A stretch of DNA of 55,536 nucleotides, the filler included, from Bipalium vagum (lineage: Eukaryota): assembly GCA_037834085.1 (NCBI GenBank). It is 3 parts of 3 records of this genome, joined end to end, with 100 filler letters (N's around TTAATTAATTAA, not from the genome) between each part and the next. Parts side by side here need not be neighbours in the genome. Positions count along the whole stretch, not along the records: positions 1 to 17,716 come from JBBMKC010054340.1; 2 more parts are not named here. One strand, given 5' to 3'. How positions within the stretch are numbered: position 1 is the first letter of the stretch; every line of letters begins with the position of its first letter. Below are positions 1,131 to 15,295 of the stretch, in pieces. The notes under the pieces were generated by a model, which made no database searches, was not told the origin of the DNA, and was given only the letters and a program-made list of their open reading frames with translations. Both the position numbers and the translations under genes were made by a program.

Positions 1131-2651
1131 AATGAACCAAGTTCCTGACCCAAAAAATTCAGTACAGAGACGAGGACAGGCTACAAAATCATCCAAAATA
1201 CTGTCACAACCAAATGCAACAATGCCAATCAACCAAGTGTCTCAGCACCAACCCGACAAGTTACACAAGACCATATTACCAAGAATTTAAAAATAAATTT
1301 AAGCCACTACCTACCCAATAGTGATGAAAAAACCATATTACACATCTTTAAGTACCAAAAACCCCCTTATCAAGAATGCATCAAACTAATCAACAACTAC
1401 GATGATCTATTTTTTCCAAACAACATAAGATTAGAAGTAGCATCTATGCAAAATCAATGTAAATTCCTCAGTATATCAAAACCCGTCATGTGCATCTATA
1501 ACATTAGAAATCCAGGCATTAAATATCTTAAGGATATCATTCCCCATATCAAAGAAACAACATACAAACACTAAAATTTTCACATTCATGTATGTAATCA
1601 GACAATCACCCTTAGAGTAGGCGGTAAACCTTACCAAACTTTAGTAGAAAAATACCACTCTATCCAAGCGATTGGTCTATCCGGCAGGGCCAGATCATTA
1701 TGCTTTGAGACCACCAAGTGCGAAACCGTAATTGTAGTGGAAGATTTATATGGCCTAGAGTTTTCAACCAACACCATTTTAAATTACAATGAAACTGATA
1801 TGGTATACCAAGCTATATTGACAAAAACGCATATTATCTACCCAGAGCGGAATTTGAGTACATACAAAATAATGCTGTATGAGTAGAGGTGACTACTTTC
1901 AGAGCGAGTTCCGATATCGAAACGCACGCTCTATTAGCAGTTCACATTATGGATCATCGGTAGTACGATACTTATTGAGATAGTCGCACCCAGGAGGTTT
2001 GTTAAACTAAATGTAGCCATGACAGGCATCGAAGACCACTCGTTTCAAAAAGGCCGCGATGAACCAAAAACATGGAAGGCAATACAAGAAGTGGTAAAAA
2101 ACAAAATCGTCATATGCCAGCAAATTGAATATCTATTTACCATTTGCGGCATTCATACAGGATCTGTGGCCTTTATTGATATATATATATATTGATATAT
2201 TGATATATATATATATATTGATATACCTCAGCTACAGCATCTTAAACAGTTATTGAATATAATTCCGCAAGACACTGTGCGTTTGCAACAGGCAGCCAAG
2301 AAATTAGATATTCCAGATATCGCCATGAACACTCGACAAGCGCAAGAATGGACTAAAGTGCAGTGTGTAAAAGTTACACATATGCTAAGGGAATTATGGT
2401 TCAAAGTGGAACTGCGAATATTAAATGAATTAAAAGCAGTAACAACAAGTATCAAATATAAAAAAGCCAACGAGGAAATATTGAATCCAACACCAGCCAT
2501 TCCTTTTAAAATATCCACACCAGAACCCAAGATTCGTGGACATAAAATACTTAAGTCCATATTCGAAAGAGAAAAAGCAGTTTCATATTTAAACCAAGTG
2601 AAGAAGCTAAAAAATATAATTGAGAAAACACTAATTTTCCCTTTTGTGTAA
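1131..2651 (+). pseudogene. Decayed ~500-codon ORF with a C-terminal DEDD (REX4/ISG20-like) exonuclease-fold region (copy 1)
   Basis: Long frames broken by few lesions: TAA at 1572, a shift near 1810, TGA at 1880, a +1 shift near 1958 and an in-frame 42-nt TTGAT(AT)n expansion at 2178-2219. Reconstructed: YIDKNAYYLP...NNAV*VEVTTF...ALLAVHIMDH/GSTILIEIVAPRRFVKLNVAMTGIEDHSFQKGRDEPKTWKAIQEVVKNKIVICQQIEYLFTICGIHTGSVAFIDIPQLQHLKQLL...VRLQQAAKKLDI. Confidence 0.6.
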
Positions 2652-3126
2652 AACTAATTTGGTTTGTTTTTTATATCCATCTGCATCATAAAATCCTAGG
2701 GAAAACCAATATCTTATATTAAAAGAATTATATTATATTAAAAAATATAATCATGTATAAATCTATTTATTTTATCTGTTGTGTAAAAATGAGTTGAAAA
2801 ATATTCTGCAACATTTTAGGATTTTTAATAATTATATAACTTATTTCCTTCTTATTAGTTAATATTTGTGTATAAAATTTATATGATAATTTTCCTTCTT
2901 TTTTTATTATAAAAGAATTAATATACTTACATTGTATTAATATTTTTATTTAAATTTATCTTTAGTATAATTAAGATATTTACTTATTATTCATGTTAAT
3001 TCGTCTTTTTAGGTCATTTTGAATACAAGACTAAAACGTCAATAAAATATCTTTTATTTACATTTCAAATGATCAAACACATAATAATAAAATGTCAACC
3101 TTATGAACAATCGCGATACTCGAATT

Positions 3127-3904
3127 CAGTATCTTGTACTCATGCCTTTTTTTAATGACCTCTTGCATCATTCTTGGAATGCATTCAAATAGAATTTTAA
3201 ATTCAGATGTTGGAATCCTCCCAATTCCTTTACAGTACCTCAATATTTGTCGGCCTACAGCTATGAACTCTGGCTTTTAGGTCAGCCCAAAACGGCTCAA
3301 TTATATTCAAATCTGGTGATTGAGTCGGCCAAACACTGAGTACGCAGATTTTTTTCATGTCCAAAAAAGAAGACACCAATTTTGATTTGTGGCATTGAGC
3401 TCCGTCTTGTTGAAATATATTCTCTGCATGATATATTTGGAGCAATCCTCTCTTCAATACATCCTTGTAGGCATCAGAATTCATCCGATCCGGACACCCT
3501 ACTAGAGTTCATTTGAAATTTTCCTATGGGACAAACCTTTCAATTTCCTAATCACCAGTTTCCGAATATCTATGGATATCTTAGCCATATTTAAAAAAAG
3601 AATTTCTAAAATTAAAAAAATATATTACTTAAGCATTAGCAAAATGTTGTACACATATAGATTTTACTTAAAAATTTAATTTATCCTTAAAATAGTTTAT
3701 ATATTTAAATGACATCAAAATTTTAAAAACGCCTTAACATAACAAATATATTTTAATAATTATACAATAATTTTTTAAAATAACTTTTTAGTTAGTTTTA
3801 AAGTTAACATTAACATAGTTCAAATCATAAAACTTTTAATATAATTCGTAATCTACTATTATTTCGATATTTACGAAGTGGTCGAAAACATATGGACGGC
3901 ATTG
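3127..3904 (-). mobile_element. Tc1-family (DD34E) transposon remnant
   Basis: FQQDGAQCH...WPTQSPDLNIIEPFWADLK (ORF 3230..3484), C-terminal IPRMMQEVIK, and a probable TIR end GGACGGCATTG followed by TA at 3905. Confidence 0.88.
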
Positions 3905-5231
3905 TATTTATTTTTTAGAGTAGTAGTAGGGAAATTACTAAAATAAATAGAGATCCAAGCTTTAAAATATAAAAAACATTATTTTTGTCCCAATATATGA
4001 GGATGAGAATATGTATTTTTACTTGTTTTTTAAAACTTCGGTGTTGGTTTATTTTAATAATTTCCATACTACTGATCGCGATTCTTTTTATAATTTTCCA
4101 ACATACTTTTCTTCGTTATGTAAATAAACTTTTGTGTAAAAAAACCCTTGACTTTCTTTGAAATCAGACTCCTGACTCTATCGAATACTAAGAAAGTTGT
4201 AGTCTATGGTGTTAATACAGTTGGAATACGACTATATTCAAGTTCTGAATCAATCCAAAATATATAATACATAGGATAAATGTAAATCATTTACAAACTT
4301 GGTTGATTCAGTCACATTAAAGATGACAGCCAGTGAAAGAAGGTGCACAAATGCCTCTTATTCTGAATCTAGACATTTTTCTAATGATAACAGAAATTTT
4401 TGACAAACAGTGTCAACAGTATCTTTGTCATCTTTCTTACTGTTTCATCCACATTATACATCATATTATGTTTTGAAATTGAATTCCATGGTCACTAATT
4501 ATATTTTTATTCTTAATGTAATTAAGAATTACGTGATAAGGCTAAACAGTACTTAGACGCTACCAGAAATAAGGAAGATAACTGAAGAAAATTTTTATCA
4601 ACAACACGGTTAAATATTTAGTACATCAAATGTAAACTTAATTCTAACTCTTAGGTGGTACCAAATAACAACAATTTTTTTAAAATAAATCATATATTAA
4701 AGTTTAAAAGCAACAATGAGAATATAAAAAATCGCAAACATCCAATTTTTCACCAACATTTTAGTGAGAAAACCATTATGAGTTCATTTTACATATCGAA
4801 AAAGAATTTCCTTGTCTATTGATAGTATTGATTTGTTTTATTAACCTTCTTTCTGATGGGATCCACAAATAATTCTTGCTCCACAGCCCAAGCTATTTAG
4901 ACTAACATTTTACTGATCCTTTAAAAACATTGAACATTTAATTGATCTTATCTTTTTGTTTGTTATTTTTATTGATCTTACTCTTTAGATTTTCATTATC
5001 CTGTAGTCTCAAATTGATTCAGAAATTATGTATAATTAAAAATATTATGAATAATAAATGTTAATATATAATGTATAAATCAATGTCACACTATTTACTC
5101 TTCTTTTTAAATTAAAATAATATACGGTCCGCAAACTAGCAAGAACATATTTAGTTTTAAAATTAGTTTGTCCGTGAAAGAATTTTCAATTTAAAATAAA
5201 TAAATATTAAAAATATTAAATATGATTAATA

Positions 5232-6360
5232 TGTGGAGACTCCAGGCAAACCAAACAAATCAAAGAAGTCAAAGTCAACCAATTCCGTTCCCAATAATTC
5301 AAGACGACCAAGTCAAAGCCAATCCAAGCCAAAAAACTAGTTAACATTATTAATCCTGTGTATATAATCTTTACCCTGTGTGATTATTACTTTAAAAAAA
5401 ATTTAATTTTGATGTGATTAATCTTTATCATGTGACCATTACTTCAAACAAAATTGTATATTTGATTATTTTTTTTATTTTTGATCTGATTCATCTTTAT
5501 CTTGTGTGATCATTTTTTCAAACAAAACTTTAATTGTGTATTTGATATCCTCCTTATTATAAAAAAATTATAATATTATATATATTAAATATTAATTATT
5601 AAGTTATAAGTGTTTATAATAAGAGTTATAATAAGTTATAAATTATTATAGTTATATTATTATCAACAGTTGTATTATTTATTATTTATTTATAAAATAA
5701 AGAAAATGTATAATAAAGTTAGATAAAGTTACTAATAATAAAAAATAGGTGAAAAATTTATAGTAAAAAATTAAATGGGTAATAAAAATAGAAATAAGGT
5801 TAAACAGTAGAGTAAAAATTAAAAAAGAAAGGTACTATTTATAAAAAAGAGAATAAAAGGAATAGTATAAAAAGGAATGAAAAAGCATAAAGACGGACAA
5901 AAAAGCAAAAAATAAAAAGGAAAAGAAAGCAAAATACGACTACAAACGAGAATAAGACTACGTCAAACAGAAATTAAACAGACAAGTGCCTACAACCAAA
6001 AAGCCGATTGAATAATTGTACCACAAGTCAGAACACGAAGTTCATACCGCGTTCTATTCTAAATAAACCAAACAAGTTTATACTATAACCAACTACGACA
6101 AACAGAATATCAGGCCTACTGAAATAGATAATTCATACGGTACTCAAGCCTAAGACATTGTACTACAACCAACGCTTATAGCCCGAACAGTTCACGAACC
6201 AAACCAATTCGTCTACAAGAAGACAACTATATAGAGATCATCAAACTAGAGCGAGGAAGCAAATAAAAGAAATATAAAAATAAAGATATTCAATCTATGC
6301 TCTTTTGATTTGTTTTTAAAAGTAATTTTTATTTTTAGTCTATATTATCTACTTGTTACA
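5232..6360. repeat. LTR-like or other interspersed repeat with TG...CA ends and three internal imperfect tandem units
   Basis: Starts TGTGGAGAC and ends TGTTACA. Units TCTTTA(C/T)..TGTG...TT(C/T)AAA(C/A)AAAA near 5368, 5422 and 5494. CTATATAGAG and AATAAA near 6230-6285. No TSD found. Confidence 0.35.
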
Positions 6361-8099
6361 TTCGTGTAACAAAGTTCTTTTGTGTATCCAATACTAAAAA
6401 TTAAAATAATAATAACGATACTATTTATTCATATATTCAATTTCGTCATTTGATAAAATATTATTTAATCCTCTTTATTTGCAACTTGTTACTTCCAAGT
6501 AATAAAGTCTATTATAAAAAAAATTAATAAAATATTATAAAAAATATAATAAATACTAGCTTGGAACTAAGGTTCGCAAGACTAGCATCGACTGTCAATA
6601 ATAAAGTAAAATCTCTAATTGATATTTTATTTTTATTTAATTAAGCAGGCGTGTCTTGTCAGACAAGGCACAGTTTGTCTATAATTAGTAAATAAATACT
6701 CAGGCCAGGACTGAGAATTATAACTTTTTTAATTCCCAATACTATAACATTTTTTTTATTGTTTATATTTCACACGCTAAGTAGGGCAGTGAGATATATT
6801 TTTCTGAGCCTAAGTGCGAGAGGATTTTTCTTAAATAATAAATATAATTAATAAAATCTATTCAAGTCAATCAAGGTCGATATCCCATATTTGTAAACTT
6901 AACCTTTATTTGAATCAAAATAAAAGTATTAAAGTTAATTCGTTCTCTCAGTTATTTTAAACGATTATAACCGAACACCAGAGTAAAAAACCATCACTCG
7001 TTAAGAACTAAATATATTAAGCTCCACCTTTACCATCTACCCATCTTTTAGGATCTTAACAAATATATAAATATGATTAAATGTTGTTAAATTTAATTTT
7101 AAAAGAAATAAGCCAAATACTTTAATAATAATACTTACTGAAAATAAATAATTATTACTTAGAATAAATGAAAAGTATTTAAAATAAATTTAAATTACTA
7201 AAATTACTAAATTATATAGTCGTATATATAACGATTAATAATTCTACATTTTCAAAATCAGATCATGAAGTATTGCCCATCGGGCAAGAAACCAGTAATA
7301 ATTTCTATTTCCTCATTCGTGATTCAAGAAAAACAGAAGATTAACTATTTACTAAGGAAAATAGACCTGAATAAGCCAATAATCCTTGGGAAGAAAACAC
7401 CAGGGATCTTTTCAGGAAAGAAATTGTAAAAAAAATTATAAAAGAAATCTAAAATTTTATTAAAAATAATTATTTAAATAGTTTAAAAATATTTGTTTAA
7501 ATAATCAATTTTGTTCCATGGATTATAATAATCTAGATAATTTATTTGAAAACTTTTTTGGCCCAGGTATTTTAAATCAAATTGCCACAATATTGTCAGA
7601 TTTTAATTAAGTCCAAGTGAAATTAAACGAAATTTTATTTATATAAATTTATATTTATAATTTAGTGATAGATCAAAAAAATTTCTGATCGAGAACAAAT
7701 ATATAATCAAACTAATCTTCAAAATTGTTAAATAACAACGAATGAGTATATATTTTTATCTATATAAATTTAATCATATCATTTTTATTATATATTTTTA
7801 ATATATAGAGCAATAATTAAATTCCGTACCCTTCTTTCATTTCCAGGGAAGAAAAGAAAATCAGTTATTAAAGAACAATAGGAATATGAATAAACCCTTG
7901 ACCTTACCTAAGAAAAGTTGTTTAGCAAAACTAAGAGATTATCAAGATATGATTCAGGCAGAATAAGGGAACTTTTAAGTCTCTTAAAAAGTGGAGCGAG
8001 CTAAGAGCCTAACGGTTAGGTGTTTAGAAGCGTGTTTTACCTATGGTTTTTAATCGACTAAAATAGCAAATTGTTTTTATAAATTTTATTAATACTAAA

Positions 8100-8292
8100 T
8101 AACAAAGAATGGGGACCAGCTAGGAAAAAACAGGCAGAATGTGATCCTATTCCAGAGGAAGATTGGCTAGCAAGAAGACCTTATGTCGACAGAACCTGGT
8201 TGAAACATCCAGATACTCAACAGATTGTCAGGTTGGACGTCAAGTATGGCATGCCAATGTTAATGACAATTAAACTTTTATTAGATTCATAA
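8100..8292 (+). pseudogene. DEDD exonuclease-like family, N-terminal fragment (copy 3), truncated next to a Merlin insertion
   Basis: KEWGPARKKQAECDPIPEEDWLARRPYVDRTWLKHPDTQQIVRLDVKYGMPMLMT aligns without gaps over its core with copy 2 (DWIKKYPCADSNWLSKPDINQIVILDVKVDFPMFMS). Confidence 0.6.
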
Positions 8293-8745
8293 GATTGTTC
8301 CAATCATCATTGAAAACATTATCCTTCCGAATAAATTCTTTCAAATAGAAACCGATTTTATCACCTGCAATTCCAAGTACCCAGATTTTGCACGGCCTCG
8401 ATGATATTTAGGTTTATGTCTAAATAACCTTTAATCAACCTGGTATATAATTCCTTGATCACCTAATTTACAAGGATTTACTGTGTAATAATTATCACAT
8501 TTTCTTAAGTCATCATAGAAGTCAATCAAAGCTTTTTTATCAACATCGATTCTTTCTTTATGCCAGTTTTTTTTCATATATTGTCCATTTTCATAGCAAC
8601 TTCAAAAATCAGCACATATATGAAATCGATATCTCTCGAAAATAGAACCTGTCCATATACTAATATATTTCTTATCATATTTCTTGTATATGGCTTGCGT
8701 TGCATTGGTTTGGCACCATTTTATCCTCCCAATAAAAATATCTTC
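8293..8745 (-). mobile_element. Merlin (IS1595/ISXO2-like) DNA transposon remnant
   Basis: Minus strand NPCKLGDQGIIYQVD*RLFRHKPKYHRGRA..IWVLGIA and ISIWTGSIFE match the Merlin pattern KLGGxGxxxQIDESxFxxKxKYHRGR...WVFG. Confidence 0.8.
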
Positions 8746-8749
8746 CTTC

Positions 8750-9335
8750 CTCGTGGGGAAAAACAGGTGAAAGATCCGATTTATTTAATCCCAAGCCGGC
8801 CTACCACTACTGAAATAACCAGCTTCAAGAAGAAAGAATGAAGCCCAACAAGAAAGGAGACTTTAGTCCACCAAAGGATTGGATAAAGAAGTATCCATGT
8901 GCAGATAGCAATTGGTTATCAAAGCCAGATATAAACCAAATAGTGATATTGGACGTCAAAGTAGACTTTCCAATGTTTATGAGCAGAATGATTCCATTAG
9001 GTGCATTATCAGATAGTCGAGGAAATTTTTACTATCCCTCTATATAAACTCCTCGCGCATATGTAGCAGTTTACAGAGCAATCAACAATGGAATAACCCA
9101 GGAAATAGCAGAAGGACAAATGGACGAATTGACTGTTAAGTTAGACTTAAGTAAGCTACTAGAGGGGAAGATAGTAATAGGATATGAAGTCAAGAAGACT
9201 CTAGAAGAAAATAGAATTGATAGGAGATGGATCATAGGATATTGGGATCCAGCAACCTTACCTATATTAAAGAAGGATAGTTTGATAGCTCTAAGGCATA
9301 CAATAATACGGGAACAACAGGAACGCACGCAAGAG
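8750..9335 (+). pseudogene. DEDD exonuclease-like family (copy 2)
   Basis: ORFs 8838..9047 and 9120..9434 are one frame separated by a single TAA (9045-9047): QIVILDVKVDFPMFMSRMIPLGALSDSRGNFYYPSI*TPRAYVAVYRAINNGITQEIAEGQMDELTVKLDLSKLLEGKIVIGYEVKKTLEENRIDRRWIIGYWDPATLPILKK. The upstream KE*SPTRK matches KEWGPARK of copy 3. Confidence 0.65.
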
Positions 9336-9339
9336 AAAT

Positions 9340-9740
9340 TAGATTCGATGCGCAGTGTTCATTACTACACAAAATCCATTTTCATTGTCATATTTATTTC
9401 CTTTTCTTTCTTTTCAGTCAAAACTATGACCTAACACTTTACTTGTTCTACTTTTTTGGGAATGCTCACTAATTCGCGTTTTGAGGTGCGTCTATGTCTT
9501 CCCTATGTATAAATAACCACATCCATGACATTGAAATATATACAAAATATTAGCTTGCATTGGTTTTGGAGTTACTGTTTTGATTTTTAAAAATTCTGTC
9601 TTTGAAGTTACAGATATTACCCTTAATCCGTCTTCATTTATGATCTGCGATATTTTACTTTCAAAATTTTTTAATCCATATGAATAGGGAATTTTAATAA
9701 TTTTCTTATATTCACTTTTCTCTATTTTTTTATTTCTTGA
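9340..9740 (-). mobile_element. Penelope-like retroelement fragment (GIY-YIG endonuclease region)
   Basis: Minus strand IPYSYGLKNFESKISQII...TPKPMQANILYIFQCHGCGYLYIGKT*THLKTRISEHSQKSRTS, i.e. the Penelope GIY-YIG signature YxFxCxxCxxxYIGKTxRHLxTRIxEH. Confidence 0.85.
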
Positions 9741-14229: not shown

Positions 14230-15295
14230 CATTTAAGTAACGGTTTGTTCAGATCTGTCATATAAAACCATGACGGGTGGGTGTCTATGAATTACAGGAA
14301 GGCCAGTTTTACATAATTATCGAAATTGAATTGTTTTTCTAATAAAATTTTGTCCATTTTTTAAAGAATTGTAAATATATCTGATAAATATGAAAGGTGA
14401 TTAAGAATTTTTTAATTTCTATTCATGCAGTTTTTCCAAAGCTACTTGTGCAGTGTGCGCTCTAGCGTTATCATGCAATAAGATAGCTATTGATCTATTG
14501 AGTAATATGGGATTTTTTTCTTTAAGTTTTGTTGATTAAGTCTAGCTGGTTACAGTATATATTTTTTCTGTGGTCGATAAGCCCTGCTTTCATGAATTTA
14601 TAATGAATCACACCTAAGCTACACCTCCAAACACTCACCAAGAGCATCTTTTGATGAATATTACTCTTCAGAATTTGTTTTGGTGATTCTTCTTTTTTCA
14701 CTGTTTTAAACGTTTTATATGGTCAAATCTGATTCATTTTTCGTCACAAGAGAAAATTCTGTTTAAAAATGATTTGTGGCTAGAAAATAAAATGAAGAAA
14801 GGTTTCAAAAAATGTTATTTCTATTTTTTCATGGAGTTCGTGTGGAACCCAATTAAGCAATTTTTTCATTATTCTTATTTGAGGTAAATGATTTAAGATT
14901 GTTTGCTTGCTGAAAGAAAACGTCACCGAAAATTAATAGGCAATCTTAGATGGATAAGATTCAAAATTAATCTTTGATTCTAGGCGACCACATAGCTTAT
15001 TTGAGAGGTCAAAATTATTGTACTAAATTTCTTGACCAATTTGATATTGTCTGCTGTATAGTAGCGCTACAGCCAAACACAATATTAATGTTTCAGGCGG
15101 ATTAAGAAACCATCTTGCCGAGGAAATATTCATACTTAACTGATTTCAAATATATTAATTTTAATTAAAATTGATTAATCAACAGATCTCGCGAAGATTG
15201 GTTTAAACATGGGAAATATGTAGATTATCAGCACAAAAACTAAATGGTGAAATTTCGAATATTATTAAATACAAATATCATGTTTGATAACCCAA
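14230..15295 (-). mobile_element. Mariner (DD34D) remnant
   Basis: Minus strand NWVPHEL, RIFSCDEK and ILLHDNARAHTA; TIR TTGGGTTATCAAACA with TA at 15296. Confidence 0.85.

Follow-up and report, generated by a model that had tools for sequence, protein, structure and literature searches.

Decayed copies of a probable accessory gene of env-bearing Ty3/gypsy elements, with a putatively non-catalytic ISG20/REX4-type domain, in Bipalium vagum

The DNA studied here is a stretch of 55,536 nucleotides (the window, at its full length) from Bipalium vagum (GenBank assembly GCA_037834085.1). Its first part, a contig of 17.7 kb with about 28% G+C (JBBMKC010054340.1), bears three decayed copies of one gene, all on the + strand. 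We consider it highly probable that these copies are remnants of an accessory gene of env-bearing, retrovirus-like Ty3/gypsy elements, here called ORFX (ORF, open reading frame), and that in its abundant lineages this gene encodes an ISG20/REX4-type fold that is catalytically dead but has been kept under selection. The element would be laid out as gag, a glycoprotein B (gB)-like env, protease (PR), reverse transcriptase (RT), RNase H, integrase (IN), a membrane-anchored region and, directly 3ʹ of pol, ORFX. Two families of the gene, A and B, are represented in the window together with a third lineage resembling family A.

The three window copies

All peptide strings quoted in an initial annotation of this DNA, which had reported three homologous, decayed copies, were located on the + strand where it had placed them. 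The copies are thus real, while their spans are wider than had been given, with copy 1 covering about 1221–2585 and copy 2 being split and starting at 7250. Copy 1, a decayed family-B ORFX, was delimited at 1221–2585 (+) by tblastn with an intact family-B protein (residues 51–492, E 4e-68), its N-terminal domain lying at about 1221–1870 and its ISG20-like pseudo-exonuclease domain at about 1870–2490. It is 67.5% identical to the ORF of locus L053 and contains several stops and two frameshifts around motif I. In blastn, its likeness to 18 other copies stops at 2581, and its overall limit lies at 2581–2585. Motif I reads VEVTTF (1883–1900, +, in the shifted frame) where catalytic relatives have D-x-E, and intact family-B members have VDVT, ADVT or IEIT at this site. 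The domain continues on the same strand with GSTILIEIV...PRRFV (from 1959 onward), KNKIVIC (2097–2117) and IDIPQLQ (2217–2237), the last standing directly after a TA-rich microsatellite (about 2166–2216, +) that lies within the exonuclease-like domain as a 13-codon insertion relative to L053.

Copy 2 is a member of family A. Its N-terminal piece (7250–7408, +) matched residues 1–53 of a family-A protein of 663 amino acids (aa) at 62% identity in tblastn; an ORF at 7265–7429 opens with Met, and eight other copies match 7250–7408. The main piece (8545–9295, +; residues 125–336, 68% identity, E 1e-63) comprises the end of the N-terminal domain and the ISG20-like pseudo-exonuclease domain up to residue 336, and it is truncated at 9295, where the blastn matches to 30 other copies all end. 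Along this piece, on the + strand, lie motif I, QIVILDVK (8937–8960), the only in-frame stop recorded for it, a TAA (9045–9047), and the strings TPRAYV (9048–9065), GKIVIGYEV (9165–9191) and IIGYWD (9231–9248). Copy 3 (7820–8303, +) is a fragment of the third, A-like lineage, made up of an N-terminal-domain piece (7820–7979) and the motif-I region (8104–8303), with motif I reading QIVRLDVK (8221–8244, +). It is 67% identical at the amino acid level and 81% at the nucleotide (nt) level to locus L034 (C209017), compared with only 40–49% amino acid identity to family A. The window copies themselves are dead, being truncated, frameshifted and interrupted.

The homology of copies 1 and 2, which the initial annotation had asserted, was assessed with intact representatives of families A and B. 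In blastp these aligned over 154 aa with about 20% identity (E 4e-5), and reciprocal phmmer searches between the families gave E values of about 1e-5, while the family-B protein matched copy 2 in tblastn at E 0.003. With only about 17–20% identity between the families in the shared domain, the likeness of copies 1 and 2 is remote yet, on these scores, above chance.

Fold, catalytic residues and selection

The ORFX domain is predicted to have the ISG20/REX4-type DEDDh (DnaQ-like α/β) fold, in agreement with the initial annotation. When the 663-aa family-A protein was compared with the PDB by phmmer, human ISG20 was found (1wlj, E 9.6e-5), and the top three PDB matches of a profile of 12 family-A and family-B domains were ISG20L2 (7yw5, 4.5e-5), the PolC exonuclease (2.6e-3) and ISG20 (8e-3). 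A profile built from 22 relatives that keep the catalytic residues matched ISG20L2 (2.2e-27), ISG20 (6.7e-21) and Arabidopsis SDN1 (2.4e-15), followed by the PolC exonuclease and PAN2. For the family-A domain, an AlphaFold2 model made from an alignment that contained catalytic relatives reached a mean pLDDT (predicted local distance difference test) of 82. Foldseek aligned this model to ISG20L2 (7yw5, E 1.4e-10, TM 0.84) and ISG20 (1wlj, 5e-10, TM 0.80), with TM values by target and a root-mean-square deviation (rmsd) of about 2.5 Å. VIA-align, which is independent of Foldseek, placed ISG20 (1wlj) first with Z 18.9, an rmsd of 2.8 Å and 164 of 168 residues aligned, and an ESM Atlas search led to ISG20 and REX4 clusters. 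In Pfam, the window pieces and the intact family-A and family-B proteins stayed below the threshold of RNase_T (PF00929), whereas the catalytic relative P0014 passed it (27.4 bits vs a cut-off of 24); a PF00929 match at E ≤ 0.01 was found in 23 of 47 sampled domains, among them most of the scanned ones that retain the five DEDDh residues.

The ORFX protein consists of a conserved N-terminal region, the ISG20-like domain and a variable low-complexity tail with acidic and basic stretches. The N-terminal region of about 120–170 residues carries an IPNxLK motif and is predicted to form two helices followed by a β-rich domain (pLDDT about 70–80). In the structure searches with the ORFX model, all matches fell on the exonuclease domain and none on the N-terminal domain, which was not searched alone.

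To assess the catalytic state, the five DEDDh positions were read in an alignment of 56 domains. All five residues (D-x-E, G-x-D-L-x-x-[D/E], H-x4-D) are kept in 27 domains and not in the other 29, and the members of families A and B are all degenerate. Motif I of the window copies is EVT in copy 1 and DVK in copies 2 and 3, in place of D-x-E. It is D-x-K or D-x-S in family A (G-x-K in one copy) and D-x-T or E-x-T in family B. The motif-II Asp (G-H-D-L-x-x-D) is replaced by T/A in family A and by F/M/L in family B. The motif-III His (H-x4-D), lost in every sampled member of both families, has become L/F in family A and V/A in family B. As for the motif-III Asp, four of the five sampled family-A copies have N, the divergent L032 keeping Asp, and family B has H, Q, N, I or V. 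Judged by this alignment, at most the first Asp survives in nearly all sampled members of the two families, L032 being a partial exception.

The losses of the motif-I Glu and of motif II that had been read from the window copies are therefore borne out by the census for the window lineages, and motif III has gone as well. The statement that all members lack the motif-I Glu did not stand, since the canonical residues are kept in two copies of the B. vagum genome (C194782 and C32663), which are each single-copy and 37% identical to one another, and in 25 of 36 sampled metagenomic relatives. The pseudo-enzyme claim thus holds lineage by lineage, for families A and B, but not across the whole family, in which intact canonical members were found. 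Dead and catalytic members have in common several non-catalytic motifs, namely P-R, G-I-T/S, D-E, K-I-V/L-I/V-G and G-Y/I-x-D; "PR" and "DE", formerly taken as specific to the window copies, are conserved across all of ORFX, catalytic members included. On a quick maximum-likelihood tree the catalytic/dead label changed at least twice, with a weakly supported backbone that makes the number and direction of the catalytic losses uncertain. Because the cellular relatives are catalytic and canonical versions of the gene exist, the dead state is most likely derived and the ancestral gene catalytic.

Some dead lineages have conserved residues near the former motifs. Family B (L055, L057, L058, L038 and L053) and related dead lineages (P0002, P0004, P0006 and P0008) share a Cys just past the former motif II. 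Family B also has a Cys-x3-5-His at the former motif III, and P0002 an adjacent Cys-His there. These residues may represent a new metal site in place of the active site. We nevertheless regard it as improbable that the domain is still an enzyme, either with a rebuilt active site or as a nuclease that works only with a partner. Motif I often retains its first Asp, the Cys and His of family B and related clades could bind metal, and Maelstrom has endonuclease activity without the DEDD residues; however, the replacement residues vary by lineage (K/T/L/N in family A, T/F/V/H in family B and yet others in further lineages), which argues against a common new catalytic constellation.

The number and state of genomic copies were examined in an assembly of 440 Mb in 272,664 contigs. 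In six-frame searches, first-look candidates numbered more than 674 in the case of family A and more than 350 in that of family B. For each family search 150 places were scored, of which all 150 were significant and many contained stops, and identities among the genomic copies ranged from about 88% down to about 32%. Intact relatives are proteins of about 420–710 aa; intact ORFs of 663 and 455 aa were found in L031 and L002, respectively, and in L055–L058 frames of 711, 614, 605 and 542 aa are free of stops, some being cut off at the edge of the contig. A homologue search with the full 663-aa family-A protein gave no match, and the relatives outside this genome came from an exhaustive profile search of 1.84 billion representatives, which returned at least 150 relatives, 35 of them below 1e-10. 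In the longer ones, the domain mostly lies at residues of about 160–400 in a protein of 420–660 aa.

The ratio of nonsynonymous to synonymous substitution rates (dN/dS) was 0.12–0.23 in every intact-domain pair with dS <0.7 (dS 0.19–0.66) in both families, the pairs having been picked among intact ORFs, which biases the ratio low. Because such ratios are found despite the lost catalytic residues, families A and B are classed here as putative pseudo-exonucleases under purifying selection. The earlier proposal of a long non-catalytic evolution before the window copies decayed agrees with this ratio, with intact ORFs of 600–710 aa and with lineages only 17–20% identical.

It could be argued that the altered domain is neutral wreckage, left by an exonuclease gene that was inactivated a single time and has since persisted as functionless baggage. 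In favour of this, four of the five catalytic residues have been lost, most genomic copies have stops, and the retention of the 3ʹ part in deletion derivatives of the elements (described below) could reflect cis needs, such as the polypurine tract and the 3ʹ long terminal repeat (LTR), rather than the protein. We find this very unlikely. The low dN/dS is seen in both lineages, frames of 600–710 aa are open in lineages that are only 17–20% identical in the domain, the PR, G-I-T/S, D-E, K-I-V-I-G and G-Y/I-x-D motifs are kept in catalytic and dead members alike, and the domain is predicted with high confidence to fold. Neutral decay would not be expected to give long frames and kept non-catalytic motifs across lineages less than 20% identical.

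The carrier elements and the surroundings of the copies

When the metagenomic gag-env-pol polyproteins described below were used as tblastn queries, no pol, gag or env was detected in the window. Because of this, the link to retroelements was drawn from other copies of the gene. Retroelement coding sequence precedes ORFX in seven of seven contexts, being pol or its membrane-anchored tail in six (L059, L060, L073/L042, L078/L061, L085 and L086) and an aspartyl-protease ORF in L087. In L007, from the B. vagum genome, RVT_1, RT_RNaseH_2 and rve adjoin the ORFX domain. In three metagenomic contigs, a giant gag-env-pol frame is followed by ORFX, and these frames run without interruption in the standard code for 2,640–3,264 aa (L060:389-9931, L059:106-9897 and L085:3-7922).

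The L060 frame contains, in Pfam order, a zinc-knuckle gag (zf-CCHC), a class III fusion glycoprotein, an aspartic protease, RT, RNase H and integrase. Its env matches Monjiviricetes_fusion (PF24664, 1e-90) at aa 1147–1528, between the zf-CCHC knuckle and PR, and a membrane-anchored tail at aa 2830–3181 follows the integrase. L085 has the same order from env to integrase, and for L059 the domains are taken from precomputed Pfam hits only. Each giant frame would be a single polyprotein that includes the envelope protein. The PR-RT-RNase H-IN order of pol was seen in L007 and L078 of the B. vagum genome and in the metagenomic L060 and L085.

Where separate ORFs stand between integrase and ORFX, they differ in length. 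L086 has an integrase ORF, a short ORF of 190 aa and then ORFX, and C186073, from the B. vagum genome, has an integrase C-terminus, a 288-aa ORF and then a family-B ORFX. In C194782 (L078/L061), also from this genome, the integrase is followed by a 539-aa ORF bearing a signal and an anchor (1047–2663) and by a canonical ORFX. The post-integrase region looks like a second membrane protein besides the gB-like env, with a signal-like segment, N-glycosylation-type sites and a C-terminal anchor, and it has no Pfam match. A region of this kind is present in the window directly upstream of copy 1, where the C-terminal part of a membrane-anchored glycoprotein-like region (11–893, +) consists of two ORFs (11–553 and 585–893) with a hydrophobic anchor at the end. 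Its counterparts in L054 and L036, ORFs that precede the family-B copies there, are 72–90% identical to it in amino acids, and it has no Pfam match either.

The env of these elements is also present in the B. vagum genome. It is collinear with protease and RT in L079–L084, and the gB-like PF24664 env gave at least 83 matches, with 1,562 first-look candidates. Env-bearing gypsy elements appear very abundant in this genome. Further, many family-A copies are internal-deletion derivatives (L007, L016, L019, L020, L023 and L032, all in the B. vagum genome). In these, gag, env, RT or IN breaks off at differing points and leads immediately, in some cases in frame, into ORFX, so that the 3ʹ gene is kept and replication genes are lost.

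Taken together, these arrangements point to ORFX as retroelement cargo and not a host gene family. The initial annotation had offered cargo of a large retroelement as one option, which is supported by the position of ORFX directly behind pol, its tail or the protease ORF in 7/7 contexts. Of the carriers that it had named, Penelope and Terminon elements gave way to an env-bearing Ty3/gypsy LTR-type element, and next to the copies neither a Penelope-like element nor a Terminon was detected. Its other option, a lineage-specific expanded family of host ISG20/REX4 paralogues that merely lies among transposons, is barely credible: the window has no LTR pair or pol and its copies are flanked by unrelated transposon debris, but ORFX lies directly behind retroelement coding sequence in every examined context, it is fused without a gap to gag, env, RT or IN in deletion derivatives, and its hundreds of copies have stops and truncations of the kind seen in decaying transposable elements.

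Several points weigh against ORFX being a selected pseudo-exonuclease gene of such elements. No direct repeat of at least 60 nt, and hence no LTR pair, was found in the window, and no complete ORFX element was seen on any single contig of this fragmented assembly, whose contigs fall short of the length of a whole element. Pfam gave no match for the window pieces or for single intact family-A and family-B proteins, and the assignment of both families to the fold rests on profile and structure evidence. To these points are added the choice of pairs for dN/dS, the catalytic relatives in the AlphaFold2 alignment, the weak backbone of the tree and the reliance of the proposed function on analogy.

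The surroundings of the window copies contain debris of other transposons. Between copies 1 and 2 there is a fragment of a Tc1/mariner-type DDE transposase (3233–3508, −; Pfam DDE_3, E 1.4e-10), and a mariner transposase fragment lies at 14525–14701 (−; Pfam Transposase_1, E 3e-7, above cut-off). An open frame of 82 aa (9495–9740, −) stands directly after the truncation of copy 2, and its end resembles the start of a GIY-YIG domain of the Penelope-like type. Pfam gave no match for the frame, and this reading of the peptide is not claimed here.

The host was checked by its mitochondrial COX1 (L074, G000:C253947:276-1577), in which conserved Asn residues are encoded by AAA, Ile by ATA and Trp by TGA. 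The reading of AAA as Asn in the FPR-x-NN and GFGNW motifs of COX1 leads to genetic code 9 (flatworms, echinoderms). The code alone would also fit, with less likelihood, an echinoderm; the mitochondrial code, the low G+C and the element type together point to a flatworm host. Several other COX1-like pieces contain numerous stops and have the look of nuclear copies.

Proposed role and comparison with known systems

We propose that the ancestral ORFX was an active 3ʹ–5ʹ exoribonuclease that would have served the element, and that in several lineages it turned into a non-catalytic module that would still use the nucleic-acid-binding cleft. The dead protein would serve the element by binding RNA, or single-stranded nucleic acid, at the 3ʹ end. 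It might thereby shield RNA 3ʹ ends or take part in the packaging or export of genomic RNA, and a host nuclease or small-RNA pathway might also find its substrates or partners occupied by it. By analogy with other dead DEDD folds, the dead domain would most likely bind RNA ends and leave them uncut.

A bolder version of this proposal is conceivable, although we would not expect it to hold in full. ORFX might be an old and hitherto undescribed accessory gene of a whole lineage of invertebrate endogenous retroviruses, descended from a captured exoribonuclease of the ISG20/REX4 kind. The active form would process or destroy RNA, for example host small RNAs or viral RNA 3ʹ ends, and the dead form, having evolved repeatedly, would act as an RNA-end decoy or dominant-negative factor against a host nuclease or small-RNA defence, the switch having accompanied the massive amplification in this genome, in which dead forms number in the hundreds and each catalytic form is single.

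Accessory genes are what makes complex retroviruses complex, and to our knowledge almost none are known beyond env in the env-bearing retroelements of invertebrates. Here, one lineage of env-bearing elements, known from the B. vagum genome and from metagenomes of soil and other sources, appears to carry consistently a fourth gene, whose exonuclease family includes the vertebrate antiviral factor ISG20. The catalytic and the putatively long-dead-but-selected forms of ORFX stand side by side as a natural series, in which it can be asked what use an exonuclease is to a retroelement and why a nuclease fold is kept after cutting ends. For genome annotation, high-copy ORFX genes without a Pfam match would otherwise be called orphan host genes.

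Among cellular proteins, ORFX is closest to the DEDDh exoribonucleases ISG20, ISG20L2 and REX4 (REXO4), which provide its best PDB matches in sequence and structure and have the same fold, motif order and spacing. These enzymes have five catalytic residues, of which four are missing from the window lineages, namely the Glu of motif I, the Asp of motif II and both the His and the Asp of motif III. Unlike ISG20 and REX4, the ORFX domain sits inside a retroelement protein of 420–710 aa, between an N-terminal domain particular to that protein and an acidic tail, and the gene is mobile and high-copy.

Functional precedents are found in Maelstrom, EXD1 and Exuperantia, in which the DEDD fold is kept under selection after loss of the catalytic residues and serves as an RNA-binding module; Maelstrom and EXD1 have also been drawn upon as DEDD-fold analogies for the retroelement genes of bdelloids (PMC5408684). 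The EXO-like domain of Exuperantia (5l80) was among the structural matches of the ORFX model (VIA-align, Z 10.9). The precedent is functional only, as these are host genes without specific sequence kinship to ORFX, a retroelement gene whose binding is putative, and Pfam gave no MAEL match for any window piece or intact protein.

The carrier resembles GAG-ENV-POL Ty3/gypsy elements with an env of the herpes simplex virus gB type, which are described from Platyhelminthes, Nematoda and Bryozoa (PMC13524379), in the RT-RH-IN order (RH, RNase H) and in the class III fusion glycoprotein that stands between gag and protease. The searched passages of that description make no mention of an exonuclease, an accessory gene or a fourth ORF, and state that other ORF arrangements were not sought (PMC13524379). 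In the full-text literature, as far as its incomplete coverage allows, no ISG20/REX4-like ORF in LTR retroelements was found, which is absence of evidence only.

The closest precedent is ORF3 of the bdelloid Juno/Vesta LTR elements and Athena/Terminon elements, a DEDDy (RNase D-like) gene whose invariant residues are kept, with the motif DEED (PMC5408684). It usually takes the place of env, and its function is unknown, with roles in small-RNA or RNA processing having been suggested (PMC5408684). Like ORFX, it is an exonuclease gene of the DEDD superfamily that LTR retroelements bear as an additional ORF behind pol. ORFX differs from it in belonging to the DEDDh branch of ISG20/REX4 and not to the DEDDy branch of RNase D; its best matches are DEDDh proteins and its catalytic relatives have the Exo III His, and neither the DEDDy signature nor closest kinship to RNase D, WRN or Rrp6 was found. 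ORFX further differs in coexisting with a gB-like env in a GAG-ENV-POL layout and in that its abundant lineages are, by their residues, catalytically dead. A DEDD gene borne by retroelements is thus already known, and what appears to be new here is its DEDDh type, with pseudo-enzyme lineages that seem to have been kept by selection.

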